A stretch of DNA of 64,000 bases from Macrostomum lignano (Eukaryota), in contig NIVC01000736.1 in NCBI GenBank assembly GCA_002269645.1, forward strand, positions 186,001 to 250,000. The letters are read 5' to 3'. The notes under the pieces were generated by a model. The model had not been told where the DNA came from. It saw only the letters and a list, made by a program, of their open reading frames with translations, and ran no database searches. A program made the translations under genes and the position numbers. This document shows, one piece after another, positions 3,001-63,494 of this stretch (within the stretch, counting starts at the first letter, position 1; the number at the start of each line of letters is the position of its first letter).

Positions 3001-6000
3001 CTTCCTCAAGAAACCGACTCTCCTGGAGAATCGCCTGAATCTTCCTCAAGAAACCGACTCTCCTGGAGAATCGCCTGAATCTTCCTCAAGAAACCGACTC
3101 TCCTGGAGAATCGCCTGAATCTTCCTCAAGAAACCGACTCTCCTGGAGAATCGCCCCCCTCTTCCTCAAGAAACCGACTCTCCTGGAGAATCGCCCCCCT
3201 CTTCCTCAAGAAACCGACTCTCCTGGAGAATCGCCTGAATCTTCCTCAAGAAACCGACTCTCCTGGAGAATCGCCTGAATCTTCCTCAAGAAACCGACTC
3301 TCCTGGAGAATCGCCTGAATCTTCCTCAAGAAACCGACTCTCCTGGAGAATCGCCTGAATCTTCCTCAAGAAACCGACTCTCCTGGAGAATCGCCTGAAT
3401 CTTCCTCAAGAAACCGACTCTCCTGGAGAATCGCCTGAATCTTCCTCAAGAAACCGACTCTCCTGGAGAATCGCCTGAATCTTCCTCAAGAAACCGACTC
3501 TCCTGGAGAATCGCCTCTTCCTCAAGAAACCGACTCTCCTGGAGAATCGCCCCCCTCTTCCTCAAGAAACCGACTCTCCTGGAGAATCGCCTGAATCTTC
3601 CTCAAGAAACCGACTCTCCTGGAGAATCGCCCCCCTCTTCCTCAAGAAACCGACTCTCCTGGAGAATCGCCTGAATCTTCCTCAAGAAACCGACTCTCCT
3701 GGAGAATCGCCCCCCTCTTCCTCAAGAAACCGACTCTCCTGGAGAATCGCCTGAATCTTCCTCAAGAAACCGACTCTCCTGGAGAATCGCCTGAATCTTC
3801 CTCAAGAAACCGACTCTCCTGGAGAATCGCCTGAATCTTCCTCAAGAAACCGACTCTCCTGGAGAATCGCCTGAATCTTCCTCAAGAAACCGACTCTCCT
3901 GGAGAATCGCCTGAATCTTCCTCAAGAAACCGACTCTCCTGGAGAATCGCCTGAATCTTCCTCAAGAAACCGACTCTCCTGGAGAATCGCCTGAATCTTC
4001 CTCAAGAAACCGACTCTCCTGGAGAATCGCCTGAATCTTCCTCAAGAAACCGACTCTCCTGGAGAATCGCCTGAATCTTCCTCAAGAAACCGACTCTCCT
4101 GGAGAATCGCCTGAATCTTCCTCAAGAAACCGACTCTCCTGGAGAATCGCCTGAATCTTCCTCAAGAAACCGACTCTCCTGGAGAATCGCCTGAATCTTC
4201 CTCAAGAAACCGACTCTCCTGGAGAATCGCCTGAATCTTCCTCAAGAAACCGACTCTCCTGGAGAATCGCCTGAATCTTCCTCAAGAAACCGACTCTCCT
4301 GGAGAATCGCCTGAATCTTCCTCAAGAAACCGACTCTCCTGGAGAATCGCCTGAATCTTCCTCAAGAAACCGACTCTCCTGGAGAATCGCCTGAATCTTC
4401 CTCAAGAAACCGACTCTCCTGGAGAATCGCCTGAATCTTCCTCAAGAAACCGACTCTCCTGGAGAATCGCCTGAATCTTCCTCAAGAAACCGACTCTCCT
4501 GGAGAATCGCCTGAATCTTCCTCAAGAAACCGACTCTCCTGGAGAATCGCCTGAATCTTCCTCAAGAAACCGACTCTCCTGGAGAATCGCCTGAATCTTC
4601 CTCAAGAAACCGACTCTCCTGGAGAATCGCCTGAATCTTCCTCAAGAAACCGACTCTCCTGGAGAATCGCCTGAATCTTCCTCAAGAAACCGACTCTCCT
4701 GGAGAATCGCCTGAATCTTCCTCAAGAAACCGACTCTCCTGGAGAATCGCCTGAATCTTCCTCAAGAAACCGACTCTCCTGGAGAATCGCCTGAATCTTC
4801 CTCAAGAAACCGACTCTCCTGGAGAATCGCCTGAATCTTCCTCAAGAAACCGACTCTCCTGGAGAATCGCCTGAATCTTCCTCAAGAAACCGACTCTCCT
4901 GGAGAATCGCCTGAATCTTCCTCAAGAAACCGACTCTCCTGGAGAATCGCCTGAATCTTCCTCAAGAAACCGACTCTCCTGGAGAATCGCCTGAATCTTC
5001 CTCAAGAAACCGACTCTCCTGGAGAATCGCCTGAATCTTCCTCAAGAAACCGACTCTCCTGGAGAATCGCCTGAATCTTCCTCAAGAAACCGACTCTCCT
5101 GGAGAATCGCCCCCCTCTTCCTCAAGAAACCGACTCTCCTGGAGAATCGCCTGAATCTTCCTCAAGAAACCGACTCTCCTGGAGAATCGCCTGAATCTTC
5201 CTCAAGAAACCGACTCTCCTGGAGAATCGCCTGAATCTTCCTCAAGAAACCGACTCTCCTGGAGAATCGCCTGAATCTTCCTCAAGAAACCGACTCTCCT
5301 GGAGAATCGCCTGAATCTTCCTCAAGAAACCGACTCTCCTGGAGAATCGCCTGAATCTTCCTCAAGAAACCGACTCTCCTGGAGAATCGCCCCCCTCTTC
5401 CTCAAGAAACCGACTCTCCTGGAGAATCGCCTGAATCTTCCTCAAGAAACCGACTCTCCTGGAGAATCGCCTGAATCTTCCTCAAGAAACCGACTCTCCT
5501 GGAGAATCGCCTGAATCTTCCTCAAGAAACCGACTCTCCTGGAGAATCGCCTGAATCTTCCTCAAGAAACCGACTCTCCTGGAGAATCGCCTGAATCTTC
5601 CTCAAGAAACCGACTCTCCTGGAGAATCGCCTGAATCTTCCTCAAGAAACCGACTCTCCTGGAGAATCGCCTGAATCTTCCTCAAGAAACCGACTCTCCT
5701 GGAGAATCGCCTGAATCTTCCTCAAGAAACCGACTCTCCTGGAGAATCGCCTGAATCTTCCTCAAGACTCTCCTGGAGAATCGCCTGAATCTTCCTCAAG
5801 AAACCGACTCTCCTGGAGAATCGCCTGAATCTTCCTCAAGAAACCGACTCTCCTGGAGAATCGCCTGAATCTTCCTCAAGAAACCGACTCTCCTGGAGAA
5901 TCGCCTGAATCTTCCTCAAGAAACCGACTCTCCTGGAGAATCGCCTGAATCTTCCTCAAGAAACCGACTCTCCTGGAGAATCGCCTGAATCTTCCTCAAG

Positions 6001-9000
6001 AAACCGACTCTCCTGGAGAATCGCCTGAATCTTCCTCAAGAAACCGACTCTCCTGGAGAATCGCCTGAATCTTCCTCAAGAAACCGACTCTCCTGGAGAA
6101 TCGCCTGAATCTTCCTCAAGAAACCGACTCTCCTGGAGAATCGCCTGAATCTTCCTCAAGAAACCGACTCTCCTGGAGAATCGCCTGAATCTTCCTCAAG
6201 AAACCGACTCTCCTGGAGAATCGCCTGAATCTTCCTCAAGAAACCGACTCTCCTGGAGAATCGCCTGAATCTTCCTCAAGAAACCGACTCTCCTGGAGAA
6301 TCGCCTGAATCTTCCTCAAGAAACCGACTCTCCTGGAGAATCGCCTGAATCTTCCTCAAGAAACCGACTCTCCTGGAGAATCGCCTGAATCTTCCTCAAG
6401 AAACCGACTCTCCTGGAGAATCGCCTGAATCTTCCTCAAGAAACCGACTCTCCTGGAGAATCGCCTGAATCTTCCTCAAGAAACCGACTCTCCTGGAGAA
6501 TCGCCTGAATCTTCCTCAAGAAACCGACTCTCCTGGAGAATCGCCTGAATCTTCCTCAAGAAACCGACTCTCCTGGAGAATCGCCTGAATCTTCCTCAAG
6601 AAACCGACTCTCCTGGAGAATCGCCTGAATCTTCCTCAAGAAACCGACTCTCCTGGAGAATCGCCTGAATCTTCCTCAAGAAACCGACTCTCCTGGAGAA
6701 TCGCCTGAATCTTCCTCAAGAAACCGACTCTCCTGGAGAATCGCCTGAATCTTCCTCAAGAAACCGACTCTCCTGGAGAATCGCCTGAATCTTCCTCAAG
6801 AAACCGACTCTCCTGGAGAATCGCCCCCCTCTTCCTCAAGAAACCGACTCTCCTGGAGAATCGCCTGAATCTTCCTCAAGAAACCGACTCTCCTGGAGAA
6901 TCGCCTGAATCTTCCTCAAGAAACCGACTCTCCTGGAGAATCGCCCCCCTCTTCCTCAAGAAACCGACTCTCCTGGAGAATCGCCTGAATCTTCCTCAAG
7001 AAACCGACTCTCCTGGAGAATCGCCTCTTCGTCAAGAAACCGACTCTCCTGGAGAATCGCCTGAATCTTCCTCAAGAAACCGACTCTCCTGGAGAATCGC
7101 CTGAATCTTCCTCAAGAAACCGACTCTCCTGGAGAATCGCCTGAATCTTCCTCAAGAAACCGACTCTCCTGGAGAATCGCCTGAATCTTCCTCAAGAAAC
7201 CGACTCTCCTGGAGAATCGCCTGAATCTTCCTCAAGAAACCGACTCTCCTGGAGAATCGCCTGAATCTTCCTCAAGAAACCGACTCTCCTGGAGAATCGC
7301 CTGAATCTTCCTCAAGAAACCGACTCTCCTGGAGAATCGCCTGAATCTTCCTCAAGAAACCGACTCTCCTGGAGAATCGCCTGAATCTTCCTCAAGAAAC
7401 CGACTCTCCTGGAGAATCGCCTGAATCTTCCTCAAGAAACCGACTCTCCTGGAGAATCGCCTGAATCTTCCTCAAGAAACCGACTCTCCTGGAGAATCGC
7501 CTGAATCTTCCTCAAGAAACCGACTCTCCTGGAGAATCGCCTGAATCTTCCTCAAGAAACCGACTCTCCTGGAGAATCGCCTGAATCTTCCTCAAGAAAC
7601 CGACTCTCCTGGAGAATCGCCCCCCTCTTCCTCAAGAAACCGACTCTCCTGGAGAATCGCCTGAATCTTCCTCAAGAAACCGACTCTCCTGGAGAATCGC
7701 CTGAATCTTCCTCAAGAAACCGACTCTCCTGGAGAATCGCCTGAATCTTCCTCAAGAAACCGACTCTCCTGGAGAATCGCCTGAATCTTCCTCAAGAAAC
7801 CGACTCTCCTGGAGAATCGCCTGAATCTTCCTCAAGAAACCGACTCTCCTGGAGAATCGCCTGAATCTTCCTCAAGAAACCGACTCTCCTGGAGAATCGC
7901 CTGAATCTTCCTCAAGAAACCGACTCTCCTGGAGAATCGCCTGAATCTTCCTCAAGAAACCGACTCTCCTGGAGAATCGCCTGAATCTTCCTCAAGAAAC
8001 CGACTCTCCTGGAGAATCGCCTGAATCTTCCTCAAGAAACCGACTCTCCTGGAGAATCGCCTGAATCTTCCTCAAGAAACCGACTCTCCTGGAGAATCGC
8101 CTGAATCTTCCTCAAGAAACCGACTCTCCTGGAGAATCGCCTGAATCTTCCTCAAGAAACCGACTCTCCTGGAGAATCGCCTGAATCTTCCTCAAGAAAC
8201 CGACTCTCCTGGAGAATCGCCTGAATCTTCCTCAAGAAACCGACTCTCCTGGAGAATCGCCTGAATCTTCCTCAAGAAACCGACTCTCCTGGAGAATCGC
8301 CTGAATCTTCCTCAAGAAACCGACTCTCCTGGAGAATCGCCTGAATCTTCCTCAAGAAACCGACTCTCCTGGAGAATCGCCCCCCTCTTCCTCAAGAAAC
8401 CGACTCTCCTGGAGAATCGCCTGAATCTTCCTCAAGAAACCGACTCTCCTGGAGAATCGCCTGAATCTTCCTCAAGAAACCGACTCTCCTGGAGAATCGC
8501 CTGAATCTTCCTCAAGAAACCGACTCTCCTGGAGAATCGCCTGAATCTTCCTCAAGAAACCGACTCTCCTGGAGAATCGCCTGAATCTTCCTCAAGAAAC
8601 CGACTCTCCTGGAGAATCGCCTGAATCTTCCTCAAGAAACCGACTCTCCTGGAGAATCGCCTGAATCTTCCTCAAGAAACCGACTCTCCTGGAGAATCGC
8701 CTGAATCTTCCTCAAGAAACCGACTCTCCTGGAGAATCGCCTGAATCTTCCTCAAGAAACCGACTCTCCTGGAGAATCGCCCCCCTCTTCCTCAAGAAAC
8801 CGACTCTCCTGGAGAATCGCCTGAATCTTCCTCAAGAAACCGACTCTCCTGGAGAATCGCCTGAATCTTCCTCAAGAAACCGACTCTCCTGGAGAATCGC
8901 CTGAATCTTCCTCAAGAAACCGACTCTCCTGGAGAATCGCCCCCCTCTTCCTCAAGAAACCGACTCTCCTGGAGAATCGCCTGAATCTTCCTCAAGAAAC

Positions 9001-12000
9001 CGACTCTCCTGGAGAATCGCCTGAATCTTCCTCAAGAAACCGACTCTCCTGGAGAATCGCCTGAATCTTCCTCAAGAAACCGACTCTCCTGGAGAATCGC
9101 CTGAATCTTCCTCAAGAAACCGACTCTCCTGGAGAATCGCCTGAATCTTCCTCAAGAAACCGACTCTCCTGGAGAATCGCCTGAATCTTCCTCAAAAACC
9201 GACTCTCCTGGAGAATCGCCTGAATCTTCCTCAAGAAACCGACTCTCCTGGAGAATCGCCTGAATCTTCCTCAAGAAACCGACTCTCCTGGAGAATCGCC
9301 TGAATCTTCCTCAAGAAACCGACTCTCCTGGAGAATCGCCTGAATCTTCCTCAAGAAACCGACTCTCCTGGAGAATCGCCTGAATCTTCCTCAAGAAACC
9401 GACTCTCCTGGAGAATCGCCTGAATCTTCCTCAAGAAACCGACTCTCCTGGAGAATCGCCTGAATCTTCCTCAAGAAACCGACTCTCCTGGAGAATCGCC
9501 TGAATCTTCCTCAAGAAACCGACTCTCCTGGAGAATCGCCTGAATCTTCCTCAAGAAACCGACTCTCCTGGAGAATCGCCTGAATCTTCCTCAAGAAACC
9601 GACTCTCCTGGAGAATCGCCTGAATCTTCCTCAAGAAACCGACTCTCCTGGAGAATCGCCTGAATCTTCCTCAAGAAACCGACTCTCCTGGAGAATCGCC
9701 TGAATCTTCCTCAAGAAACCGACTCTCCTGGAGAATCGCCTGAATCTTCCTCAAGAAACCGACTCTCCTGGAGAATCGCCTGAATCTTCCTCAAGAAACC
9801 GACTCTCCTGGAGAATCGCCCCCCTCTTCCTCAAGAAACCGACTCTCCTGGAGAATCGCCTGAATCTTCCTCAAGAAACCGACTCTCCTGGAGAATCGCC
9901 TGAATCTTCCTCAAGAAACCGACTCTCCTGGAGAATCGCCTGAATCTTCCTCAAGAAACCGACTCTCCTGGAGAATCGCCTGAATCTTCCTCAAGAAACC
10001 GACTCTCCTGGAGAATCGCCTGAATCTTCCTCAAGAAACCGACTCTCCTGGAGAATCGCCTGAATCTTCCTCAAGAAACCGACTCTCCTGGAGAATCGCC
10101 TGAATCTTCCTCAAGAAACCGACTCTCCTGGAGAATCGCCTGAATCTTCCTCAAGAAACCGACTCTCCTGGAGAATCGCCTGAATCTTCCTCAAGAAACC
10201 GACTCTCCTGGAGAATCGCCTGAATCTTCCTCAAGAAACCGACTCTCCTGGAGAATCGCCCCCCTCTTCCTCAAGAAACCGACTCTCCTGGAGAATCGCC
10301 TGAATCTTCCTCAAGAAACCGACTCTCCTGGAGAATCGCCTGAATCTTCCTCAAGAAACCGACTCTCCTGGAGAATCGCCTGAATCTTCCTCAAGAAACC
10401 GACTCTCCTGGAGAATCGCCTGAATCTTCCTCAAGAAACCGACTCTCCTGGAGAATCGCCTGAATCTTCCTCAAGAAACCGACTCTCCTGGAGAATCGCC
10501 TGAATCTTCCTCAAGAAACCGACTCTCCTGGAGAATCGCCTGAATCTTCCTCAAGAAACCGACTCTCCTGGAGAATCGCCTGAATCTTCCTCAAGAAACC
10601 GACTCTCCTGGAGAATCGCCTCTTCCTCAAGAAACCGACTCTCCTGGAGAATCGCCTGAATCTTCCTCAAGAAACCGACTCTCCTGGAGAATCGCCTGAA
10701 TCTTCCTCAAGAAACCGACTCTCCTGGAGAATCGCCTGAATCTTCCTCAAGAAACCGACTCTCCTGGAGAATCGCCTGAATCTTCCTCAAGAAACCGACT
10801 CTCCTGGAGAATCGCCTGAATCTTCCTCAAGAAACCGACTCTCCTGGAGAATCGCCTGAATCTTCCTCAAGAAACCGACTCTCCTGGAGAATCGCCCCCC
10901 TCTTCCTCAAGAAACCGACTCTCCTGGAGAATCGCCTGAATCTTCCTCAAGAAACCGACTCTCCTGGAGAATCGCCTGAATCTTCCTCAAGAAACCGACT
11001 CTCCTGGAGAATCGCCTGAATCTTCCTCAAGAAACCGACTCTCCTGGAGAATCGCCTGAATCTTCCTCAAGAAACCGACTCTCCTGGAGAATCGCCCCCC
11101 TCTTCCTCAAGAAACCGACTCTCCTGGAGAATCGCCTGAATCTTCCTCAAGAAACCGACTCTCCTGGAGAATCGCCTGAATCTTCCTCAAGAAACCGACT
11201 CTCCTGGAGAATCGCCTGAATCTTCCTCAAAAACCGACTCTCCTGGAGAATCGCCTGAATCTTCCTCAAGAAACCGACTCTCCTGGAGAATCGCCTGAAT
11301 CTTCCTCAAGAAACCGACTCTCCTGGAGAATCGCCTGAATCTTCCTCAAAAACCGACTCTCCTGGAGAATCGCCTGAATCTTCCTCAAGAAACCGACTCT
11401 CCTGGAGAATCGCCTCTTCCTCAAGAAACCGACTCTCCTGGAGAATCACCTGAATCTTCCTCAAAAACCGACTCTCCTGGATAATCGCCTGAATCTTCCT
11501 CAAAAACCGACTCTCCTGGAGAATCGCCTGAATCTTCCTCAAGAAACCGACTCTCCTGGAGAATCGCCTGAATCTTCCTCAAGAAACCGACTCTCCTGGA
11601 GAATCGCCTGAATCTTCCTCAAAAACCGACTCTCCTGGAGAATCGCCTGAATCTTCCTCAAGAAACCGACTCTCCTGGAGAATCGCCTGAATCTTCCTCA
11701 AGAAACCGACTCTCCTGGAGAATCGCCTGAATCTTCCTCAAGAAACCGACTCTCCTGGAGAATCGCCTGAATCTTCCTCAAGAAACCGACTCTCCTGGAG
11801 AATCGCCTGAATCTTCCTCAAGAAACCGACTCTCCTGGAGAATCGCCTGAATCTTCCTCAAGAAACCGACTCTCCTGGAGAATCGCCTGAATCTTCCTCA
11901 AGAAACCGACTCTCCTGGAGAATCGCCTGAATCTTCCTCAAGAAACCGACTCTCCTGGAGAATCGCCTGAATCTTCCTCAAGAAACCGACTCTCCTGGAG

Positions 12001-13760
12001 AATCGCCCCCCTCTTCCTCAAGAAACCGACTCTCCTGGAGAATCGCCTGAATCTTCCTCAAGAAACCGACTCTCCTGGAGAATCGCCTCTTCCTCAAGAA
12101 ACCGACTCTCCTGGAGAATCGCCTGAATCTTCCTCAAAAACCGACTCTCCTGGAGAATCGCCTGAATCTTCCTCAAGAAACCGACTCTCCTGGAGAATCG
12201 CCTCTTCCTCAAGAAACCGACTCTCCTGGAGAATCGCCTGAATCTTCCTCAAGAAACCGACTCTCCTGGAGAATCGCCTGAATCTTCCTCAAGAAACCGA
12301 CTCTCCTGGAGAATCGCCTGAATCTTCCTCAAGAAACCGACTCTCCTGGAGAATCGCCTCTTCCTCAAGAAACCGACTCTCCTGGAGAATCGCCTCTTCC
12401 TCAAGAAACCGACTCTCCTGGAGAATCGCCTGAATCTTCCTCAAGAAACCGACTCTCCTGGAGAATCGCCTGAATCTTCCTCAAGAAACCGACTCTCCTG
12501 GAGAATCACCTGAATCTTCCTCAAAAACCGACTCTCCTGGATAATCGCCTGAATCTTCCTCAAAAACCGACTCTCCTGGAGAATCGCCTGAATCTTCCTC
12601 AAGAAACCGACTCTCCTGGAGAATCACCTGAATCTTCCTCAAAAACCGACTCTCCTGGAGAATCGCCTGAATCTTCCTCAAGAAACCGACTCTCCTGGAG
12701 AATCGCCCCCTCTTCCTCAAAAACCGACTCTCCTGGATAATCGCCTGAATCTTCCTCAAAAACCGACTCTCCTGGAGAATCGCCTGAATCTTCCTCAAAA
12801 AACCGACTCTCCTGGAGAATCGCCTGAATCTTCCTCAAGAAACCGACTCTCCTGGAGAATCGCCCCCTCTTCCTCAAGAAACCGACTCTCCTGGAGAATC
12901 GCCTGAATCTTCCTCAAAAACCGACTCTCCTGGAGAATCGCCTGAATCTTCCTCAAGAAACCGACTCTCCTGGAGAATCGCCCCCTCTTCCTCAAGAAAC
13001 CGACTCTCCTGGAGAATCGCCTGAATCTTCCTCAAGAAACCGACTCTCCTGGAGAATCGCCTGAATCTTCCTCAAGAAACCGACTCTCCTGGAGAATCGC
13101 CTGAATCTTCCTCAAGAAACCGACTCTCCTGGAGAATCGCCCCCCTCTTCCTCAAGAAACCGACTCTCCTGGAGAATCGCCTGAATCTTCCTCAAGAAAC
13201 CGACTCTCCTGGAGAATCGCCTGAATCTTCCTCAAGAAACCGACTCTCCTGGAGAATCGCCCCCTCTTCCTCAAGAAACCGACTCTCCTGGAGAATCGCC
13301 CCCTCTTCCTCAAGAAACCGACTCTCCTGGAGAATCGCCTGAATCTTCCTCAAGAAACCGACTCTCCTGGAGAATCGCCCCCTCTTCCTCAAGAAACCGA
13401 CTCTCCTGGAGAATCGCCTGAATCTTCCTCAAAAACCGACTCTCCTGGAGAATCGCCTGAATCTTCCTCAAGAAACCGACTCTCCTGGAGAATCGCCCCC
13501 TCTTCCTCAAGAAACCGACTCTCCTGGAGAATCGCCTGAATCTTCCTCAAGAAACCGACTCTCCTGGAGAATCGCCTGAATCTTCCTCAAGAAACCGACT
13601 CTCCTGGAGAATCGCCCCAATCTTCCTCAAGAAACCGACTCTCCTGGAGAATCACCTGAATCTTCCTCAAAAACCGACTCTCCTGGATAATCGCCTGAAT
13701 CTTCCTCAAGAAACCGACTCTCCTGGAGAATCGCCTGAATCTTCCTCAAAAACCGACTCT
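1..13760. repeat. 40-bp satellite array (CTTCCTCAAGAAACCGACTCTCCTGGAGAATCGCCTGAAT)n, about 340 copies, truncated by window start
   Basis: Exact 40-bp periodicity read directly. Recurrent variants: CCCCCT for CTGAAT, 36-mers lacking GAAT, 39-mers lacking one G, one 34-mer near 5765. Array ends abruptly near 13760. Confidence 0.99.
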
Positions 13761-14036
13761 CTTCGAGTCACACGGCGCGCCAGTGTTTCACACAGGAAAG
13801 TACATCTTGTACTTGCTTGAAGTGTCCGCCTCGTGCAGGTAAATAATTTTCAGACTACTTTGCACAGAAATTAATTTCTAACTTCTAATCTGACGCTAAC
13901 ACAGAGTTAACAAAAACTTCAAAAATCAAAAAGTCAAAACTAAAGTCAAAATAAAAAGCAGAAATTATTATTCAAGCTGAATAGCCAATAGCATTGGCGC
14001 AGTGAAAGCGCAAAATGTAAATCTGTTGGGTGCGGA

Positions 14037-30575: not shown

Positions 30576-35964
<5,389 letters not shown>

Positions 35965-42013: not shown

Positions 42014-45000
42014 TCAAAGGTTGCTCCGCTGCTCGGCGGCAGCGCCGCTCATGTGGTGCAGCAGCTGCTCGGCCTGGTGGTTCTGGTGGTGGTGGTGAAG
42101 CCCGGCAGCTCCGTGCTGCTGCTGCTGAAGGAAGGCGGCCGCTGCGGCGGCAGCGAGAGGCAGACGAGGCGGCTGCAGAAACAACGGCAGCAGGGGCGGA
42201 AGCTTGCCCCATCCGCCGGGCGGAGGCAGAGCCGGCAGGCCACCCAGCGGCGGAGGCGGCGGCGGCGGCTGCTGCTGCTGGTGCGACGGCGACTGAGACG
42301 GCGGCTGATGCTGCTGCGGCTTGGACACGGCGGCTGCGGCGGCTGCGGCAGCGGCGGCGGCCCAGAGCCTCGGCTGTGCGTGCAGCCTGTCGCCAGCTTT
42401 GCCGGGCGGCTTCTCGTCGCTACTGGGAGAGGCCGGTTGGTAGGCCAGGTGCTGGTGCTGGTGCTGGTGCTGCAGCTGGTGCTGGTGCTGGTGCTGCAGC
42501 TGGTGCTGGTGGAACACTGCGCTCACTGTGGAGTGAGCCAGCAGCTGCTCCATGCTCTCCCTGCAGGCGGTGCAGGCGGTGCTTATGAAAATACGAGGTA
42601 CACGCAATGGCGGAGGTGGCCCTGCTATTGCTAGCTGACATTGTTATTTCTGCATCGAATCTGAACCTCATCATGTTCAAACTCCGACATCGCTTGCCTT
42701 CCCTTATCAGCGATCCAGCGATAGATTCGATAATTTGCCTTTTCTTTACCGTCGTCTGTCTTTTCTTGTTTTTTTTAATGCTTTCGCAAAAGCAAACTTC
42801 TTATTCGTGTCGGAGCTGCGGGAGTGCAGCGGCTTCTGCAGCCCTCAGCCTCCCCCCCCGCCCGGCCCCATCAGCTGCGTATCGATGAACGCAACCCCCC
42901 CGCCTGATGTATAGAAAGTGGCTCGTCGGTTAGAAGGCCGCAGTGAAAGTTTATACAAGAAAAATCACTACAGGCATCAGGTGGGCGGGCGCCGCGCGGA
43001 AGACACGCAGAAAAGAGGTGCCACTTCATGCTGCGCCGGCCAGACCAGCAGCAGGAATTCCACTTGCGGGCGGCTCGTGAGAGGCAGGGAGAGGCGATCC
43101 CGGCATTTGCGTCTCCACGGCCCACGGCAGAGAGGGGTTCGCGATTTCGGGCTCCACTTGACTGCCTGGCGGCCCCCCTCCTCATCCCAAACAAAAGCTT
43201 TGATAATAACAATAATTCATGTCGGCCTTATTATCGATTAGCAATAATAGAATCCGATGCCGCGGATTTCCGAGTCTGATCCCAGGCGCCGCCCCAGCCC
43301 CTCCCTAAGCCTCTTGAGCTCTCAAGGATTTCGCGTAAATAAACAGAGCGCGAAGGGGATTTGTGGGGATTCGAGTGCCGGCAGCGGGCACCGGGAATGT
43401 GATGCTTACATTACTCGGCGGTAAGTGGGCCGGTCAGATCCCCAGTAATCCCTACACGACAAGTTACCGACTTTTTTACCCCAAATCTCAATGCGTTTTA
43501 TCCGGTATCGCATTTTTCTCCCTCATCTTCCCTCAGTTGCGACTGCGGTGCCTGAATTCCCCTGCATGCCCGATTTCCTGTCCGACTGCAATAATCCACC
43601 TGCATGGGTGGCTTTCCGATTCCCTGATTCGAATTGTCCGCATGGCCGGGCGGGGGGGGGGGTCAAGCTGAGTGGCTCACTGTTTCTGAAGGCCAAGCCT
43701 AACCCTTGGTTGTGGGATTCTGTTTCCATGACTGCATGGCTTTGATCCCAATTTGACTGGTAACACTGCTTTATTTTAGTTAGCGTTGCTTGCTCCCTCC
43801 TAGTCACTCTGTCAGTAACTCTGCCAGTCACTCTCTGTCCAGTCACTCTCTGTCAGTCACTCTCTCAGCCACTCTCTATCAGTCACTCTGTCAGTAACTC
43901 TGCCAGTCACTCTCTGTCCAGTCACTCTCTGTCAGTCACTCTCTCAGCCACTCTCTATCAGTCACTCTGTCAGTCACTCTCTGTCAGTCACTCTCTCAGC
44001 CACTCTCTATCAGTCACTCTGTCAGTAACTCTGCCAGTCACTCTCTGTCCAGTCACTCTCTGTCAGTCACTCTCTCAGCCACTCTCTATCAGTCACTCTA
44101 TCAGTCACTCTCTGTCAGTCACTCTCTGTCAGTCACTCTGTCAGTAACTCTGCCAGTCACTCTCTGTCCAGTCACTCTCTGTCAGTCACTCTCTCAGCCA
44201 CTCTCTATCAGTCACTCTGTCAGTCACTCTCTGTCAGTCACTCTGTCAGTAACTCTGCCAGTCACTCTCTGTCCAGTCACTCTCTGTCAGTCACTCTCTC
44301 AGCCACTCTCTATCAGTCACTCTCTGTCCAGTCACTCTCTGTCAGTCACTCTCTCAGCCACTCTCTATCAGTCACTCTGTCAGTCACTCTCTGTCAATCA
44401 CTCTATGCCAGTCACTCTCTCAGCCACTCTCTATCAGTCACTCTGTCAGTCACTCTCTGTCAATCACTCTATGCCAGTCACTCTCTCAGCCACTCTCTAT
44501 CAGTCACTCTGTCAGTCACTCTCTGTCAGTCACTCTCTGTCAGTCACTCTCTCAGCCACTCTCTATCAGTCACTCTGTCAGTCACTCTGTCGGTCACTCT
44601 CAAAGCTCCCCCCAATTTTCTCACCTTTCATAGTCGGTCAGCCTGGACGAGTCCCGGAAGCCCTTGGCGAACGGATTCCTGTCAATCTTGAGCTTGGTGA
44701 TCTGCAAGTCGGGCACAGCGGGTGGCGGCTGATATGGGGGAATGGAAATCCAAGGCCCCGCCCGTAATCCCTCAGTCAGTCCCGTGCTCGGGGAGATTAG
44801 CCCCCCCCCCCGTCAAAGTGAGGACTTGGGAAGGCGATTTACTGAGGCGTCGGCCCTTTTTCGCCCTCGGAATTGAATTAATCCTCACTTGATTAGCCCA
44901 ATTAGGGAGCCGCCCTGCCTGCCCCCGCCCAGCCCCGCAAGCCTTTCTCCAGTTTCTGCAACAAGTTGCCGCGCTTCTCCGAAAGCGTGGGCGCGGACCG

Positions 45001-48000
45001 TTTCTTCTTCATAGAGAGCGAGGCAGTTGTGATTGATAGGCGAGGCGGGATAATGAACGGGTGCGAGGGCAGATTCTGCCGGAGATTAGCCGCCCCCCCC
45101 CAGTCAGACTCCAACTCGATAAAAAAGTGGGAGACGAAAGTCCCCATCAAATATTCAATTAGTGGGGCTTGCTGATCCTGATGGGGCCTTCCCAGCTTCT
45201 CTGCGGCCACGCGGGGAGCCGAGACGAGAGTTGGCAACTCACCAGCTGATTTTGGTAGGCCGTCACCGCGATGAAGACGGTCTCGGGGAACTGGAACTTC
45301 TTCTGGTCCAGGCTCTGCAACGCGGCGAAGTTGCTGACGTGCCCGGAGCCCGGGTTCAGGCCGGCGCCGGTGGCCTGGCCGACCCGGAGCAGGTGGACGC
45401 GAGGCTGGTACTTGTGCATGGAGTTGAGCACAATCTGTGGGACAGGGAGGCTGGTACTTGTGCATGGAGTTGAGCACAATCTGTGGGACAGGGAGGCTGG
45501 TACTTGTGCATGGAGTTGAGCACAATCTGTGGGACAGGGAGGCTGGTACTTGTGCATGGAGTTGAGCACAATCTGTGGGACAGGGAGGCTGGTACTTGTG
45601 CATGGAGTTGAGCACAATCTGCGGGACAGGGAGGCTGGTACTTGTGCATGGAGTTGAGCACAATCTGTGGAACAGGGAGGCTGGTACTTGTGCATGGAGT
45701 TGAGCACAATCTGTGGAACAGGGAGGCTGGTACTTGTGCATGGAGTTGAGCACAATCTGTGGGACAGGGGTTCAGGGCCAATTCGGTGAGTCTTCGTTCC
45801 TTGAGCTTGGCTGCGAGTCTGAGGCCATGGCTCTGGCAAATGGTGCTGAAATCAAATTTGACTTCAAAAGCTTTAGATCAGGCGCCTCACAACCTCGATT
45901 AGCCTCACAGCCTCGATTAGGCGCCTCAAAACCCCGATTAGACGCCTCACAGCCTCGATTAGGCGCCTCACAACCTCGATTAGGCGCCTCACAACCTCGA
46001 TTAGGCGCCTCACAACCTCGATTAGGCGCCTCACAGCCTCGATTAGGCGCCTCAAAACCCCGATTAGACGCCTCACAGCCTCGATTAGGCGCCTCACAAC
46101 CTCGATTAGGCGCCTCACAACCTCGATTAGGCGCCTCAACGCCTCACAATGGCGACTCCATGCCTTACACCAGCGACTCAGAACCACGATTTTGTCGTTC
46201 AAAGCTCATGCACTTTGATGCCTCAAGGCCCTCAACCATACCATATCAGGCCCCATCGCAGCAGACTCACGTAGTGCTTGTCCAGCACATTGTTGGTCAG
46301 CTTCAGCTTCTCAAAGCTGACCGTCTGCTTCATCAGCTGGTCTCCAGTGAACGGGCTGTCCGGGTGGATGTACAGCCGCTGCGGCAGCTCGGGGTCGCCC
46401 TTGCCGGCCACCATCCAGGCGCTGCGGTGGTAGGCGTAGCGGTAGCGGTTCTTGTCCACGGACACAATGTCCATGACCACGTGGTAGCGCTCCTCCGGGT
46501 CCAGGCCGCTGAAGGACACTCGAACCACTGGGAACATCCGCCTGCGGGTTGCGGAAGCTCTTCACATGCACATTCTCCAGGCTTGATAATACATTCCCAA
46601 ACTAAAAACTGCACATTTCCCTGCAGGCTTTATACTCGTAATACATTCCCAAACGTATATGACATAAAAAAATAAAATAAAATGTAATTTTGCTTTCTAA
46701 ACTATTTTATTCAATCTAAACTTCCCTAGAACTATAAACTATACGATTATCAATCCAGTTTTGGCCGCAACAGCATCCCAAAACCTGCATCCCCTTACCA
46801 AGCATTTTGTTTTAAAAATCACTTTCCAACAAATGAAGCGCAAAAACAAAGTTGCGATCTTTTTGCTTTACTAAATGAAGCGACTCGCTTTAGAGATTCC
46901 CCCCCCCTAGCAACAGCGCGTGGAAGTGGGGAGGAGGGGGGGCGGTGACGTAGGGCCGCAGGGGAGTCGCCGCAGATGCCGCTGCGTGTCCTTTCCTCCC
47001 CATGGCTGTCGCCGCCGCAGACAACAACACGAATCCCAAATCCCAATTTATCACGGCAGCAGAGCTGCGGGGCTCAATAAACTGCGCAGGCGCCACGTGG
47101 CGGCCCCAGCTGGCCCAGAGCCGCGATCCATCAAGCGCGCCATCTCTTCAAATCTGCTTTTTCCCCCTTGCCCCCCCCCCCGGACAGTTTTCGGAGCTGT
47201 CGCTGCCGGTCGCGCCGACCGAAGGAAAATCCGAAAATCCGCTTGTAGCGAAAATTTCAAGATGAAATACAAAAATCTGCTTGCGACTTGTGCGCGCTAT
47301 TAGAAAGAAAAAAGACCGCCTCCAACCTGCTCCCGCCAGTTGCCATGCAGGCGGGATATTCGATACTACTGGGGAAAATTACAGTCGGCACTGATTGGCC
47401 TTCAATGGCCACTTTGCATTGCAGAGACTCCGCAAGGGCCAATGCTTAGCAATTCAATTAACTTAAATGCTGCATTCTGAGGCCATAAATTCAAGATTGG
47501 GAAAATTGAATTTCGCAATTGTGTGTCCAGTAATTATGGATTTGTGTGCAACGGCAGATGCAAAGAGCTTTGAAAACAACAGACAGTCATAAAGCACATT
47601 AGAACACCATATAGAACATATTAGAACACTATGGGACACATTAGAACACCATGAACACATTAGAACACCATGAACACATTAGAACACCATGAACACATTA
47701 GAACACCATGAACACATTAGAACACCATGAACACATTAGAACACCATGAACACATTAGAACACCATGAACACATTAGAACACCATGAACACATTAGAACA
47801 CCATGAACACATTAGAACACCATATAGAACATATTAGAACACCATGAACACATTAGAACACCATTATCAAATAAACGAAAAACGCCCGCCTCACCTGCCC
47901 GACTTAGTGATAATCATCTCAGTGCCCAGGTCATTGAACTGGTCCCACAGGTCTTTGTTGTCCAGACGGCATTGGACCCCGGCGAGCCGCTCGCTGTCTC

Positions 48001-49121
48001 CCGGAAGCTGCTGCTGCGGCTGCTGATGCAGCTGGTGCTGATGGCGCTGCTGCCGCCTCTGCGAGTCCCCACTAATCCGCTGTCGCTTCGCAGCCGCTGC
48101 ACCCGAGAGAGGCTTGATCGGCTGCGCTTTCGGCACGGCTGCAGTTTCTAGGAAATAAAACAGGCTGGACAAAGTGAGACCGAGTGCAACAACCATGACC
48201 CCTGTGACCTCCCATGACCCCTCTGACTCCCATGACCCCTCTGACTCCCATGACCCCTCTGACTCCCATGACCCCTGTGACTCCCATGACCCCTCTGACT
48301 CCCATGACCCCTCTGACTCCCATGACCCTGTGACCTCCCATTACCCCTCTGACTCCCATGACCCCTGTGACTCCCATGACCCCTCTGACTCCTATGACCC
48401 CTCTGACTCCCATGACCCCTGTGACCTCCCATGACCCCTCTGACCCCCATGACCCCTGTGACTCCCATGACCCCTGTGACTCCCATGACCCCTCTGACTC
48501 CCATGACCCCTGTGACCTCCCATGACCCCTCTGACCCCCATGACCACCTCTGACCCCCATGACCACCTCTGACAGTAGGTGAGTCATGGCAACCAACTCA
48601 CCGAAATCCTCGCTTTCGCCGTCCTCGCGCCCCGCATCATCCGACTCGGCCTCCGCCGCCGCCGTCGCCGCCATCGCCGTCTCGTCGTCATCGCCGAATT
48701 CGACATCAACGTCTTCGTCAGCGGAGACGGCGAGTTCGGCGCCACGGTGCTCGTCAGTAGCGTCGCTGTCTTCACCGTCATCGACGTCGGCGGGCGAGCA
48801 GCGGCGCTTCCGCTTCGGCTGGGACGCCTTCCGGCGCTGAAGAGTCTGCTGCAGTTGCGGCGGCGGCGGCGGCGGCTTCAGGGGCCGCTGCAGGGGAAAC
48901 AGCTTCATCAGCGGGACTGGGAACTGCGGCCGGTGCTGCTGGAACGAAGTCTTCGCTTTCGTCATCAGCGAGTCGATGGAGAAGGCTGAGGCCCGAGCCG
49001 ACAGCTGCTGCTGGGCCGGCGCCCGCTGTGGCGGAGTCGGAGAGGCGGACTCAGCGGACTCAGGAGATGCTGGGCAGCTCGGGTTGCTGCCGCTGCTGCA
49101 GCTGTTGTCTTCCGTTGTCAT
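42014..49121 (-). CDS. TBX20: T-box transcription factor Tbx20 (H15/midline), about 619 aa: complement(join(42014..42560,44625..44701,45243..45434,46271..46541,47895..48147,48602..49121))
   Basis: N-terminal eh1-like [11 protein letters not shown]; T-box [19 protein letters not shown]|[50 protein letters not shown]|[30 protein letters not shown]|[26 protein letters not shown]|RES. YAYHRSSW-like and [12 protein letters not shown] are Tbx20-type signatures. Phases 1,2,0,0,2 are consistent. Confidence 0.95.
43800..44600. repeat. Complex (CAGTCACTCTCTGT)-based minisatellite, Tbx20 intron 5
   Basis: Direct reading. Confidence 0.94.
45401..45768 (-). repeat. 46-bp x8 tandem repeat of the Tbx20 intron 3 acceptor plus the first 33-34 nt of exon 4
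   Basis: Unit on - strand: CCTGTCCCACAG|ATTGTGCTCAACTCCATGCACAAGTACCAGCCTC. Exon-start positions 45434+46n, n=0..7. Confidence 0.97.
45880..46145. repeat. 21-bp minisatellite (GCCTCACAACCTCGATTAGGC)n, Tbx20 intron 3
   Basis: Direct reading. Confidence 0.94.
47620..47855. repeat. 19-bp minisatellite (AACACATTAGAACACCATG)n, Tbx20 intron 2
   Basis: Direct reading. Confidence 0.95.
48190..48570. repeat. 18-bp minisatellite (CTCCCATGACCCCTCTGA)n, Tbx20 intron 1
   Basis: Direct reading. Confidence 0.95.
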
Positions 49122-60400: not shown

Positions 60401-63400
60401 CGGTGCCGGCAAAACAACCTGGGAGTTCCTGCAGATGGCGAACGCTAAACGGATCAACCCCTCGCTAACGAAACGACCCCTGCCTGCCTCAGCCAATAAA
60501 AAAGCACTAATGAGGTTCCAATGCAAAAGCTTTGGTTTGGTTTTGAAAAGCGACTTTCTTAGTCATCTATTCTCTTTCTGAACCAGTTCATCTGCCCTCG
60601 TCTGTGTTTACTCTCCCTCTCTCACTAGTTCAACTGGGTTTATCTTATCTCTCTTCCCTCACTGCCATCTGATTGGCTCTTCAACCCCCCCCCCTAATTG
60701 AATGCTTCTTATCGATATGTTTGGGCTCAGCGCTCCATGCACCGGTTTCTTCTATAAATAGAAAGGAGGGGTGGAGTGGAAAGAGGCAAGATTGAAGAGC
60801 CAATCAGAAGGCGTTGAAGGAGAGAGATAGAAAAACGAGACTGAGCTAGACAGAGGGGGAGAAATAAGAATAACGAAACTGAGCTAGACAGAGGGGGGAG
60901 ATAAGAATAACGAGACTGAGCTAGACAGAGGGGGGAGATAAGAATAACGAGACTGAGCTAGACAGAGGGGGGAGATAAGAATAACGAGACTGAGCTAGAC
61001 AGAGGGAGCGAGAAGGAGAACAGAGTAAACAGAGACAGGGCAGATGCACTGAGTACGAGCTAGATGACTGAGAGGCGGCCTGCACAAGCGGCCTTAGATA
61101 TTTGGATAATCTGACCATGGGATCAGGGCAGCCCAGTGCAGTATTTACAACTGCAACTTGATGAGTCCAATAGAGACAATTCAAGTGTACTCGTACCCCT
61201 GTACTCGGGCGGCGATGGCCTGCAGCATCTGCATGCAAGCAGAGTGCCGGCCCTCCATCCGGTCGCCCATCGCCTGCAAGCAGGAGGCCACGACCTCAAC
61301 CCGCTCCTCCAAGCCCTGGCACTTCTCTGACAGGCTGTCCAGCTGCCTGAGCTTCTTCTCCGTCTCCTTCAGGCCCTCCTTGATGCGCACGCGAACCACA
61401 CCCTGAATAGGGTGCAGAAGCGAGTTATCCGACTGCTGCTGCTACTGCTAACTATACTACTGTCCGGATATATCACACTACTGACCTGCAGCATGTCCCA
61501 GTCGATCCCGGCAGCTCCTCCGCCGCCCCCTCCGGCGTCGCCGATTCCCAAGACGGCGCTGCCGCTGCCGCCACCGCCGCCTCCACTGGAAGCAGCTCGA
61601 GTTGCAGAGCGAACACCGGCGACGCCACCTCCACCACCGCTGCCGCCGCCGCCGCCGCCGCCCTCTTCCTGACGCCGCAGAAGCTCCTGGGCTCGTAGGT
61701 TCTCCCATTTCACCAGTTGGCTGTCCGTGGCGCGAGCCAAGGCGCCGCCCCGAGAAATCCCGCCTGAGTTGGCAACGAAAAGAGGAAAAGCTGTCATTTA
61801 AACCACTTTGCATCGCGCTACTCACAGTAGCTAATGCGAATGAAGGAAGTCACTCGGCTGGTGCTGGGTTTGAGGGGTGCTGTGTTTGAGGGGTGCTGGG
61901 TTTGAGGGGTGCTGTGTTTACGGGGTGCTGGGTTTGAGGGGTGCTGTGTTTGAGGGGTGCTGGGTTTGAGGGGTGCTGGGTTTGAGGGGTGCTGGGTTTG
62001 AGGGGTGCTGGGTTTGAGGGGTGCTGTGTTTACGGGGTGCTGGGTTTGAGGGATGCTGGGTTTGAGGGGTGCTGGGTTTGAGGGTGCTGGGTTTGAGGGG
62101 TGCTGGGTTTGAGGGATGCTGGGTTTGAGGGGTGCTGGGTTTGAAGAGTGCTGTATTTGAGGTGTTATGGGTTTGAGGGGTGATGGGTTTGAGGGATGCT
62201 GATTCGTCAAATGAGTCTCTATGTTGAGTTCTGAATATTCAATCAGGCTGAACCGAAGTTCTTACGCAGGAATCCTCTGAACGCTGCAAAGGAGACAAAG
62301 GGTTGGGAGACAGCATGGTGAAAATGCTGGATTCACATGGAGCGAATGCTTGCAATTTAGCTGGAACTCATTGTGACTCACTGATCTTGGACATGACCGG
62401 GTCTGTCTCGAACGCCATGCCCCTGCCTTTGCAGATGATGTACAGCAGGATCGCCAGATTCCAGAAGATCGACAGCGGCGGCGGGGCGACGCTTCGCTCG
62501 GTGAAGTCGCGGGTGATGAGGTAGCGCTGCAGAGTCCAGTACTGCAGCGAGGAGCTCTGGATGCGCTCGTAAGTATTGCTGCGGCGAAGGCACGTGTAGA
62601 TCTAATGTAGATCTGATCTCACTCATGTAGATCTCTAAGTAGATCTAATCTCTGTCATGTAGATCTCTAAGTAGATCTAATCTCTGTCATGTAGATCTCT
62701 AAGTAGATCTAATCTCTGTCGTGTAGATCTCTAAGTAAATCTAATCTCTCTCATGTAGATCTCTAAGTAAATCTAATCTCTCTCATATAGATCTCTATGT
62801 AGATCTAATCTCTCTTATGTAGATCTAATTTAGATCTAATTTCTCTCATGTAGATCTCTAAGTAGATCTAATCTCCCAAACTTAGATCTCTAATTATATT
62901 TAATCTCTCTCTTATTAGATCTAATCTCTTTCATGTCGATATCTAAATAGGTCTAATCCCAAATTTAAATCTCTAAGTTTATATAATCTTCCATTTCAGT
63001 CACAATGCAGATCTCCTTTTCTCTTTACACAATACGGTAAGTCTAATCTATTCTATAGATTACTAAATATAATCTATCAGAAGAATCTGGAGAACTACCC
63101 TACCCTTTTGTCATTCGGAAACTAGATGTTTAAAAACTTTGATGTGACATCGGAAATCTGCTTCGGAAACATAGCAGTATTCATACTTTTGTAATAACCT
63201 ATATTCTAAAATCTAGGCTAGGAATTCCATATTAAGAATGGTCTGTCTGTGTAAAACTTTTACCAACATCTTGGATGTCACACTGGAGTTCAACTTCACT
63301 CACGCGAACATTGCGATCAGCAGGTTCAGCAGCAGCACATTTGTGAACACGGTGTAAAAGCCAAGCAATACCGGAGCGATGTACCGGCCCCACGAGTCCG

Positions 63401-63433
63401 GGCACTTTGTAGAGTTCAGCTTGCACTCCTCAG
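57468..63433 (-). CDS. TRPM2: TRPM2-like cation channel, 3' part (S6, TRP helix, coiled coil, NUDT9-H): complement(join(57468..57716,58413..58577,59254..59667,60287..60428,61197..61402,61486..61763,62382..62578,63304..63433)), 5'-partial
   Basis: S6 FYTVFTNVLLLNLLIAMFA|NTYERIQ..YWTLQRY..TRDFTERSVAPPPLSIFW (TRP box and proline motif); heptad region KETEKKLRQLDSLSEKCQGLEERV; NUDT9-like FNAFD..VNKKSMTGSYQL..RPLHP..GRGRLPLWGPNHA..VTRWRRD..VLQ..; GENAWLETACVNVHE..WEDV. All eight exons join in phase. The symbol reflects domain architecture, not tested orthology. Confidence 0.88.
57815..58345. repeat. 16-bp minisatellite (AAACCCTAAACTCCAC)n, TRPM last intron
   Basis: Direct reading. Confidence 0.96.
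58700..59080. repeat. Minisatellite of about 16 bp (CAAACTTCACAACCCC)n, TRPM intron
   Basis: Direct reading. Confidence 0.92.
60838..61006. repeat. 37-bp repeat x5 (GAGACTGAGCTAGACAGAGGGGGGAGATAAGAATAAC), TRPM intron
   Basis: Direct reading. Confidence 0.9.
61858..62205. repeat. 16-bp minisatellite (TGGGTTTGAGGGGTGC)n, TRPM intron downstream of the TRP-helix exon
   Basis: Direct reading. Reverse complement of the 63495-64000 array. Confidence 0.96.
62598..62960. repeat. TAGATCT-based minisatellite, TRPM intron
   Basis: Direct reading. Confidence 0.88.
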
Positions 63434-63494
63434 CTGAGGGTTGGGCAAGGCAAGGTTTGCTTTGCGTGGTGTTTTATAACCAGTATGCAAACAT

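Follow-up and report, generated by a model that had tools for sequence, protein, structure and literature searches.

Eight tandem copies of a 3' splice site at the intron 3/exon 4 boundary of a Macrostomum lignano TBX20 gene

The window, which here denotes the whole analysed stretch of 64,000 nucleotides from Macrostomum lignano, carries on its minus strand a gene that, judged by the protein searches, is the M. lignano TBX20 orthologue. Its product matched the M. lignano UniProt entry A0A1I8IW74 (gene model P0001) at 100%, and the best non-self matches were TBX20 proteins of flatworms, vertebrates and arthropods at 65–69% identity, with TBX15/18 at ~59%, the subfamily being assigned by ranked protein matches rather than by phylogeny. 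When exon 3 was joined to the acceptor at 45434, the spliced model yielded an uninterrupted T-box (Pfam PF00907, positions 2–182 of 182, 253 bits, E = 2e-75) and matched the T-domains of TBX3, TBX1 and TBX5 in the PDB with E = 1e-68 to 1e-60; the exon 3 ORF by itself reached E = 7.7e-32 against the Pfam T-box. These matches bear out the gene name given in an earlier note on this DNA. An N-terminal FSI-type (eh1-like) stretch aligned weakly with the human TBX20 segment LSSRANAFSIAALMS (E = 0.098, with an approximate human query sequence). All coding exons were intact and flanked by canonical splice sites, with no visible decay. The earlier note had placed the exon 3 donor at 46271, which is the correct junction, although exon 3 ends with this nucleotide and the donor GT follows at 46270–46269. 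We found no literature on Macrostomum TBX20.

Table 1. Features of the TBX20 locus and of the 46-bp array (positions in the window)
Feature	Position	Strand	Evidence
TBX20 exon 1 start (MTTEDNSC…), with FSI-type motif; P0001 residues 1–72 identical to window	48960..49121	-	
TBX20 exon 2, 3' part; donor GTGAGG	47895..47995	-	
TBX20 exon 3; donor GTGAGT from 46270	46271..46541	-	Pfam T-box
Intron 3 with innermost acceptor, 836 nt (514 nt with outermost)	45435..46270	-	
Separate 21-bp x 12.7 minisatellite inside intron 3	45876-46138		TRF
Branch-point-like CTGAAC, 45775-45770 (A at -16/-15), and CTCAC, 45790-45786 (A at -31)	45770..45790	-	Consensus match only
46-bp x 8.0 minisatellite	45401..45769	-	TRF, unit listing, pattern search
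Unit 1, outermost; acceptor AG 45758-45757, exon start 45756, frame +1	45724..45769	-	Sequence, frame computation
Units 2 and 3; exon starts 45710 (in frame, +92 aa) and 45664 (frame +2)	45632..45723	-	
Unit 4; exon start 45618, frame +1	45586..45631	-	
Units 5–8, all identical to consensus; exon starts 45572 (in frame, +46 aa), 45526, 45480 and 45434	45402..45585	-	
TBX20 exon 4 for normal T-box, ends AYQNQL, 192 nt; donor GTGAGT	45243..45434	-	Pfam
TBX20 exon 5; +1-frame isoforms stop 6 codons in	44626..44701	-	

The acceptor of exon 4 belongs to a conserved phase-0 intron that precedes the motif (I/L)(I/V)LNSMHKYQP, and CAG|ATTGTG stands at this very point in the window. In many animals, ORFs confined to the corresponding exon start with CAG|(I/L)(I/V)LNSMHKYQP and finish with AYQNQL|V. 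Based on this comparison of coding sequences, the position of the acceptor is ancient and deeply conserved.

It is this boundary that has been amplified. TRF reported a repeat of period 46 with 98% matches, 0% indels and a score of 717, and the highly identical head-to-tail units, falling into the size range of 10–100 bp, make the array a minisatellite and a candidate VNTR. A pattern search with the 46-mer returned eight minus-strand matches with 0–1 mismatches at 45402–45769 and none elsewhere in the window, while 100 shuffles gave 0 matches. Each unit (full sequence CCCTGTCCCACAGATTGTGCTCAACTCCATGCACAAGTACCAGCCT) combines the 13-nt tail of intron 3 with the first 33 nt of exon 4, so that all eight units read ccctgtcccacag|ATTGTGCTCAACTCCATGCACAAGTACCAGCCT in gene sense, with the acceptor at the bar. 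A polypyrimidine tract followed by CAG| is present in 8/8 units, the acceptor AG is intact in every one, and successive acceptors are spaced 46 nt apart. TRF and the unit-by-unit listing therefore agree with the earlier description of eight tandem acceptors, including their exon starts. The outermost unit is preceded by the unique intron context ...ccctgaacccctgtcccacag, whereas the eighth runs straight into the remainder of exon 4 (CAGCCT|CGCGTCCAC); the junctions between units read CAGCCT|CCCTGT.

Substitutions were found in three of the eight units, each located in the 13-nt intron-derived part and each leaving the AG untouched. The variant ctgtTccacag occurs in the units with exon starts 45710 and 45664, and the variant cccGcag in the unit with exon start 45618. 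The placement of these variants carries no significant signal of selection, the probability for two independent events being (13/46)^2 = ~0.08. A variant common to two adjacent units fits a duplication that followed the mutation. With 98% unit identity and three variant sites only, we read the array as young, its copy number of eight, on which the frame of the outermost acceptor depends, being that of one assembly.

We next consider the reading frames that the eight acceptors would open. As the earlier note had proposed, frame computation retained the frame for 45434 (+0 aa), 45572 (+46 aa) and 45710 (+92 aa) only. The three +1 acceptors (45756, 45618 and 45480) lead to a stop in exon 5, and the two +2 acceptors (45664 and 45526) to a stop within exon 4. 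The array itself is free of stops in all three sense frames, again as described before. Insertions of 46 or 92 residues split the Pfam T-box match at profile position ~126, and an uninterrupted T-box was obtained from acceptor 45434 only. Of note, this innermost acceptor is in frame at any copy number, such that a gain or loss of units alters its competitors alone.

Although the eight sites share their immediate sequence, they differ in what lies upstream. An AG-free zone, spanning −3 to −37, precedes acceptor 45756 only; in the other seven, AGs contributed by exon sequence lie at −18 and −24. Within the units, the pyrimidine fraction is 0.76 over −20 to −4, the best polypyrimidine tract among the three TBX20 acceptors examined, and the branch-like motif is a weak TGCTCAA at −37. 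As the duplicated 46-bp segment lacks the native branch point, the native architecture is kept by the outermost, out-of-frame acceptor alone, which substantiates the claim that this copy combines the original intron context and its CTGAAC motif with a shifted frame. The same note had concluded that normal TBX20 expression must skip the ancestral acceptor. Splicing from 46271 to 45434 does bypass seven upstream acceptors, but the label 'ancestral' is arbitrary, since a tandem duplication divides the ancestral surroundings, the upstream side staying with the outermost unit and the downstream side with the innermost. Likewise, describing the array as exon sequence turning into intron is fair if 45434 is used.

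Which acceptor the spliceosome should prefer can be predicted from rules worked out in mammals and yeast, not in flatworms. Scanning from the branch point to the first AG was reportedly described by Smith et al. in 1989 and 1993. Together with the AG exclusion zone (Gooding et al., 2006; PMC1431707), such scanning would point to the outermost site. Exon definition, by comparison, could favour the innermost acceptor, which gives an exon of 192 nt as opposed to 514 nt. RNA structure masking some of the acceptors was considered as well and discarded, as the array folded no better than shuffled sequences (z = −1.1); moreover, a small UUGUGC/GCACAA hairpin is identical in each unit, so structure cannot tell the acceptors apart. 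Searches of large protein collections returned no transcript-derived fragments of M. lignano, but only the two gene models P0001 and P0128. An 80-aa query across the natural junction had a best match of 59% identity, hence no Macrostomum fragment; this protein search apparently favours matches near the query length, and a chimeric junction query missed even P0001.

The array is embedded in an exceptionally repeat-rich environment. The window contains 38 minisatellites, which together take up 48.5% of its length; within the TBX20 span, the share is 30%. All TBX20 introns examined (2, 3 and 5) as well as the region separating exon 1 from exon 2 contain a minisatellite, and those next to the donors of exons 2 and 5 begin at a distance of 25–30 nt. 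Genome-wide, simple or tandem repeats make up 15% of M. lignano DNA (PMC5730564), and the species is a neopolyploid, with ~70% of the assembly in three-copy paralogous blocks that show ~2% SNP divergence and differ mostly by indels (PMC10733133). We identified a second TBX20 copy, gene model P0128, whose T-box is identical to that of the window while its flanks are different. Exact look-ups of the exon 3 ORF, P0001, P0128 and two long array-crossing ORFs retrieved no further copies on record. Among DNA collections, in which flatworm sequences would hardly be expected, metagenome contigs yielded 0 hits to the unit-to-unit junction and genome contigs 0 hits to the spliced junction of exons 3 and 4. 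Both UniProt models join DKHY| of exon 3 to exon 4 as expected for acceptor 45434; they are, however, poor, frame-driven predictions that skip exons 2 and 5 and do not constitute transcript evidence.

Taking these data together, we favour, with a probability of roughly 55%, the view that the array is a young, incidental minisatellite over the intron 3/exon 4 boundary of one TBX20 paralogue and that this copy is probably a hypomorph or an incipient pseudogene. The process would have started with the tandem duplication of a 46-bp segment reaching from intron position −13 to exon position +33, which may then have grown to eight copies through slippage or unequal exchange, as presumably did the other minisatellites that make up nearly half of the window. 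The resulting pre-mRNA would present eight sequence-identical 3' splice sites, of which one (45434) is predicted to restore the normal T-box, two to insert 46 or 92 residues mid-domain, and five to cause a frameshift and a stop. A substantial share, possibly most, of the transcripts from the array-bearing copy could thus be spliced unproductively. Such a hypomorph or incipient pseudogene would be tolerated through other TBX20 copies in the neopolyploid genome, and we consider that part or most of the productive splicing has probably been lost in this copy and is buffered by its paralogues. The sequence shows directly the anatomy of the array, the frames, the identity of the gene, its repeat-rich setting and the second copy; the order of events and the preference among splice sites are deductions, as would be any effect via NMD or gene dosage.

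The seven upstream units might instead be plain intron, with 45434 used almost exclusively and TBX20 output normal, a scenario that we regard as possible but rather unlikely. Both database gene models carry the 45434 junction, although they are frame-driven predictions. All exons are intact, and 45434 yields an exon of normal size together with a complete T-box. Each unit also brings its own good polypyrimidine tract and the weak branch-like motif, and the other TBX20 introns examined tolerate minisatellites close to their donors. Arguing against such silence, the seven upstream acceptors are identical in sequence, transcribed earlier and closer to the donor; furthermore, the native branch point belongs to the outermost acceptor, whereas the inner ones have two AGs following their sole branch-like motif, an arrangement disfavoured by the exclusion rule (PMC1431707). 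That the array is an assembly artefact, the true locus having a single copy or another copy number and hence a different frame pattern, has only a small chance of being correct. The genome is notoriously hard to assemble, consisting of ~75% repeats and three near-identical subgenomes (PMC5730564, PMC10733133), but consensus errors do not produce structured substitution variants, one of them common to two adjacent units. In addition, the units differ by no indels, single long reads easily span a 368-bp array, and the 37 other arrays in the window point to a genuine genome property, which still leaves room for a miscount of one unit.

Most improbable of all, in our estimation, is the proposal of the earlier note that the array could act as a repeat-length switch, taken here to mean that a variable copy number under selection controls TBX20 output by toggling productive, insertion and NMD isoforms. 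The idea is formally conceivable, as 46 is not divisible by 3 and a change in copy number would alter which acceptors are in frame; in humans, tandem-repeat length has been associated with splicing variation (PMC6692358, PMC10078293). The productive innermost site, however, is in frame whatever the copy number and is never removed, and the insertion isoforms disrupt the T-box mid-domain. No sign of conservation, polymorphism or regulation backs the switch, the array is one among 38 apparently neutral ones, and the gene has paralogous copies. Given pervasive minisatellites and paralogue redundancy, an incidental, buffered mutation is the simpler reading, and we conclude that the array most likely arose as an accident of a polyploid genome that is extremely prone to forming repeats. 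Nothing suggests that TBX20 regulation depends on it. It would be surprising, and we expect neither, if a copy-number-variable array set the amount of productive TBX20 mRNA or if the spliceosome reliably bypassed seven identical, better-placed acceptors in favour of the eighth; were either true, the locus would be a natural eight-way 3' splice-site competition assay and a case of subgenome dosage tuning in a neopolyploid.

Provided that the sequence is right, a single donor is followed by eight identical 3' splice sites, the first alone having the native branch point and the last alone giving a functional protein. Such an arrangement would amount to a natural experiment that cleanly sets branch-point scanning and proximity against exon definition, and it occurs in a species for which transgenesis is available (PMC5730564). 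The favoured reading would further illustrate both the erosion of a gene by runaway minisatellite formation in a young polyploid and the absorption of exon sequence into an intron.

The array does not define a new category, as tandem-array splice sites and repeat-dependent splicing have already been described. Zhuo, Madden, Elela and Chabot reportedly presented alternatively spliced introns derived from tandem arrays (PNAS, 2007), and the TBX20 array shows one trait of alternative splice sites of this origin, a consensus splice site repeated in each unit. In NAGNAG acceptors, the AGs are 3 nt apart and the frame is always preserved. The TBX20 sites resemble them in lining up several possible acceptors at the end of a single intron, but with a spacing of 46 nt, at which five of the eight shift the frame, they fall outside the NAGNAG class. 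A parallel is offered by internal tandem repeats in human paralogues: these remodel exon/intron structure mostly when units of ~30 bp expand in genes of recent duplication, and they can generate new introns or lengthen existing ones (De Grassi and Ciccarelli, 2009; PMC2812944). As in these internal tandem repeats, an intragenic unit of minisatellite size, here 46 bp, has been amplified in a gene that is a recent paralogue and would change its exon/intron structure; in contrast to them, the TBX20 unit spans an existing, deeply conserved acceptor in the core of a DNA-binding domain, its length is not divisible by 3, and its splice sites are candidate sites. Tandem duplication of coding sequence with a splice signal has also been proposed to turn exon-derived sequence into intron, NMD being invoked for unspliced or mis-spliced forms (2010; PMC2891723). 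TBX20 shares the duplicated coding sequence, the splice signal and, if 45434 is used, the exon-derived sequence becoming intron, but that model requires an AG|GY proto-splice site for exact excision. We rejected exact excision of the extra units as a new intron, since the unit contains neither AGGT nor AGGC and its acceptor CAG| is followed by ATT; lacking AGGT, the additional units could only be absorbed into the existing intron 3, via the innermost acceptor. With its AG-free zone downstream of branch-like motifs, the outermost TBX20 acceptor looks like a classical AG exclusion zone (PMC1431707), a rule that stems from mammalian systems and not from flatworms or eight-fold repeated sites. Finally, repeat length has been linked to splicing in humans, both for the spl-TRs (PMC10078293) and for the MIR137 VNTR, whose length correlates with splice-site use elsewhere in the exon (PMC6692358). 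Unlike the MIR137 VNTR, the repeated unit of TBX20 holds the splice site itself.

An alignment to human TBX20, serving only as a guide to the exons, showed that the minus strand carries a T-box gene, the exon coordinates of which were set by splice-site inspection. The spliced T-box was 100% identical to that of P0001 (UniProt A0A1I8IW74), one of two Macrostomum lignano TBX20 protein models, and its next-best matches were TBX20 of flatworms, vertebrates and arthropods (65-69% identity) and TBX15/18 (~59%). The protein obtained via the acceptor at 45434 (acceptors are named here by their first exon base) matched the Pfam T-box over its full length (positions 2-182 of 182, 253 bits), as well as the solved TBX3, TBX1 and TBX5 domains. 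Exon-only ORFs of many animals start with Q, which is the in-frame reading of the acceptor's CAG, continue with (I/L)(I/V)LNSMHKYQP, and end in AYQNQL|V; judged from these sequences, the intron position before exon 4 is ancient. At the end of exon 3 (46271-46279), M. lignano TBX20 reads …NNVLDKHY|IVLNSM compared to …LD(K/R)HGYIILNSM in the other retrieved flatworm TBX20s, that is, one residue (G) fewer directly before the amplified junction.

Coordinates of genes, domains and repeats within the window
Feature	Position	Strand	Basis or properties
40-bp-unit satellite (CTTCCTCAAGAAACCGACTCTCCTGGAGAATCGCCTGAAT)	1-13761		13.7 kb, 345 copies, 97% identity; runs off window's left end
MBT repeat	30576-30911	+	Pfam E=3e-13
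MBT repeat	31595-31984	+	Pfam E=8e-15
SAM domain	35632-35961	+	Pfam E=7e-14
TBX20 exon 5	44701-44626	-	splice-site inspection
TBX20 exon 4	45434-45243	-	splice-site inspection
21-bp minisatellite, intron 3	45876-46138		21 bp x 12.7, 88% match
TBX20 exon 3	46541-46271, donor GTGAGT from 46270	-	splice-site inspection
TBX20 exon 2	3' end 47895	-	splice-site inspection
18-bp minisatellite, between exons 1 and 2	48193-48573	-	period a multiple of 3
Short ORF (…GFYTVFTNVLLLNLLIAMFA)	63303-63473	-	Ion_trans, E=0.002, under Pfam cutoff

Tandem Repeats Finder delineated a minisatellite across the start of exon 4 at 45401-45769 (period 46 bp, 8.0 copies, 98% matches, 0 indels, score 717). A 46-mer search of the whole window returned eight adjacent minus-strand copies at 45402-45769, five perfect and three with one mismatch, no further copies outside this stretch, and zero matches in shuffled sequence. 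In gene orientation, the unit reads ccctgtcccacag|ATT GTG CTC AAC TCC ATG CAC AAG TAC CAG CCT, comprising a 13-nt intron tail with terminal CAG and 33 nt coding for 11 residues. Unit-by-unit reading bore out the eight exon starts listed in an earlier note on this sequence (45756, 45710, 45664, 45618, 45572, 45526, 45480 and 45434) and also its claim of a stop-free repeat, as no stop codon occurs across the array in any of the three sense frames. Single substitutions are found in three units, all within the intron-derived 13 nt: the 45710 and 45664 units both carry the variant ctgtTccacag, and cccGcag occurs in the 45618 unit. The acceptor AG is intact in all eight.

As predicted from the reading frame, acceptor 45434 adds nothing and would give the normal protein, whereas the other two in-frame acceptors, 45572 and 45710, would insert 46 or 92 residues, insertions that interrupt the Pfam T-box match at profile position ~126, leaving two separate parts. 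Acceptors 45756, 45618 and 45480 would cause a +1 shift with a stop six codons into exon 5, and 45664 and 45526 a +2 shift with a stop within exon 4. The earlier arithmetic, which counted three in-frame acceptors and inserts of these two lengths, is therefore correct. In one detail, its "donor 46271" is the last base of exon 3 and not the donor GT.

Because the duplicated segment begins only 13 nt upstream of the AG, the native branch point lies outside it. Upstream of the outermost acceptor, 45756, positions -3 to -37 are free of AG and hold, by motif only, two branch-like sequences, CTGAAC (A at -16/-15) and CTCAC (A at -31), in agreement with the earlier proposal that this copy retains native intron context. 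The seven inner acceptors have exon-derived sequence upstream, with AGs at -18 (CCAG) and -24 (CAAG) and a weak TGCTCAA at -37 as sole branch-like motif. By the AG-exclusion rule for 3' splice-site choice (PMC1431707, 2006), a mammalian rule that may not hold in flatworms, normal acceptor architecture is seen only at the outermost, out-of-frame site. From this branch-point and AG analysis, we infer, with a probability of roughly 0.55, that productive splicing of the array-bearing TBX20 copy is substantially reduced and that paralogues buffer this loss. The main rival, in which splicing goes to the innermost acceptor and the array behaves as silent intron sequence, could draw on the polypyrimidine tract common to all eight units, the best among the three TBX20 acceptors examined in the window, and on exon definition, which would favour the normal 192-nt exon produced from 45434; yet the confinement of normal branch-point/AG architecture to the outermost acceptor speaks against it, and we consider it rather unlikely. 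RNA folding of the array was unremarkable (z = -1.1) and the same for every unit.

The second protein model, P0128 (UniProt A0A1I8IXG4), has an identical T-box, but its repeat lengths and several of its flanking positions are not those of the window; therefore, at least one paralogous TBX20 copy exists. Three-copy paralogous blocks with an SNP divergence of ~2% make up about 70% of the M. lignano assembly; when indel lengths are included, they differ by 36% (PMC10733133), a pattern to be expected from rampant gain and loss of minisatellites. Both P0001 and P0128 join DKHY to the exon 4 start, i.e. they use acceptor 45434. Compared over 44626-47995, however, both skip the conserved exons 2 and 5 and carry spurious, unrelated ORF sequence in their place (one example derives from ~45000-44905), so that they represent frame-driven predictions, not splicing evidence, and the T-boxes of the annotated proteins are truncated.

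Within the 64-kb window, 38 merged arrays (period >=10, >=3 copies; periods about 14-47 bp) cover 48.5% of the sequence, or 34% without the 13.7-kb left-end satellite, far above the 15% that simple/tandem repeats occupy in the M. lignano assembly, of which 180-312 Mb is duplicated (PMC5730564). Minisatellites make up 30% of the TBX20 span, with an array in each intron examined (2, 3 and 5) and between exons 1 and 2; two begin 25-30 nt from the donors of exons 2 and 5, and only the 46-bp array crosses an exon boundary. The unrelated 21-bp minisatellite sits 107 nt upstream of it in gene orientation. The 18-bp array leaves a 447-aa open frame (49415-48075, minus strand) from exon 1 through the repeat, which gene predictors could easily mistake for coding sequence. 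Convergent with TBX20, exon-like ORFs at 30576-35961 encode two MBT repeats and a SAM domain, have minisatellites in their introns, and look like a Scm/L3MBTL/SFMBT-type Polycomb-group gene. The short ORF, whose Ion_trans match is weak, is similar to the pore/S6 end of TRP-type channels, so the window's right edge probably carries a channel gene.

We propose that a segment from -13 to +33 around the conserved acceptor was duplicated in tandem and then brought to eight copies by the minisatellite process pervading this genome. The array would be young (98% unit identity), and the variant found in two adjacent units implies duplication after mutation. The TBX20 copy carrying it would be one of several nearly identical ones, and in this copy eight identical acceptors would compete and only the last be productive. 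That the array is an assembly artefact seems improbable given the structured substitutions and lack of indels among units, with a copy number off by one unit being possible. We give least credence to the earlier suggestion of a repeat-length switch, which is highly implausible: the productive acceptor is in frame whatever the copy number, the insertion isoforms disrupt the T-box, and the array resembles its 37 neighbours. The observation behind that suggestion stands, and its interpretation holds only in part.

Zhuo et al. in 2007 reportedly described alternatively spliced introns created from tandem arrays. The intron gain by tandem duplication of Rogers/Lehmann (PMC2891723) is related, but the AG|GY proto-splice site that defines this model is missing from the 46-bp unit, which rules out excision of the extra units as a new intron; on sequence grounds, absorption into intron 3 is the only route open to them. 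NAGNAG acceptors differ from the TBX20 array in spacing and frame effect. Repeat-length effects on human splicing are known (PMC6692358, PMC10078293), and PMC2812944 describes recent paralogues whose exon/intron structure was remodelled by minisatellite expansion. The TBX20 array is thus a rather striking case, but of a phenomenon already described.
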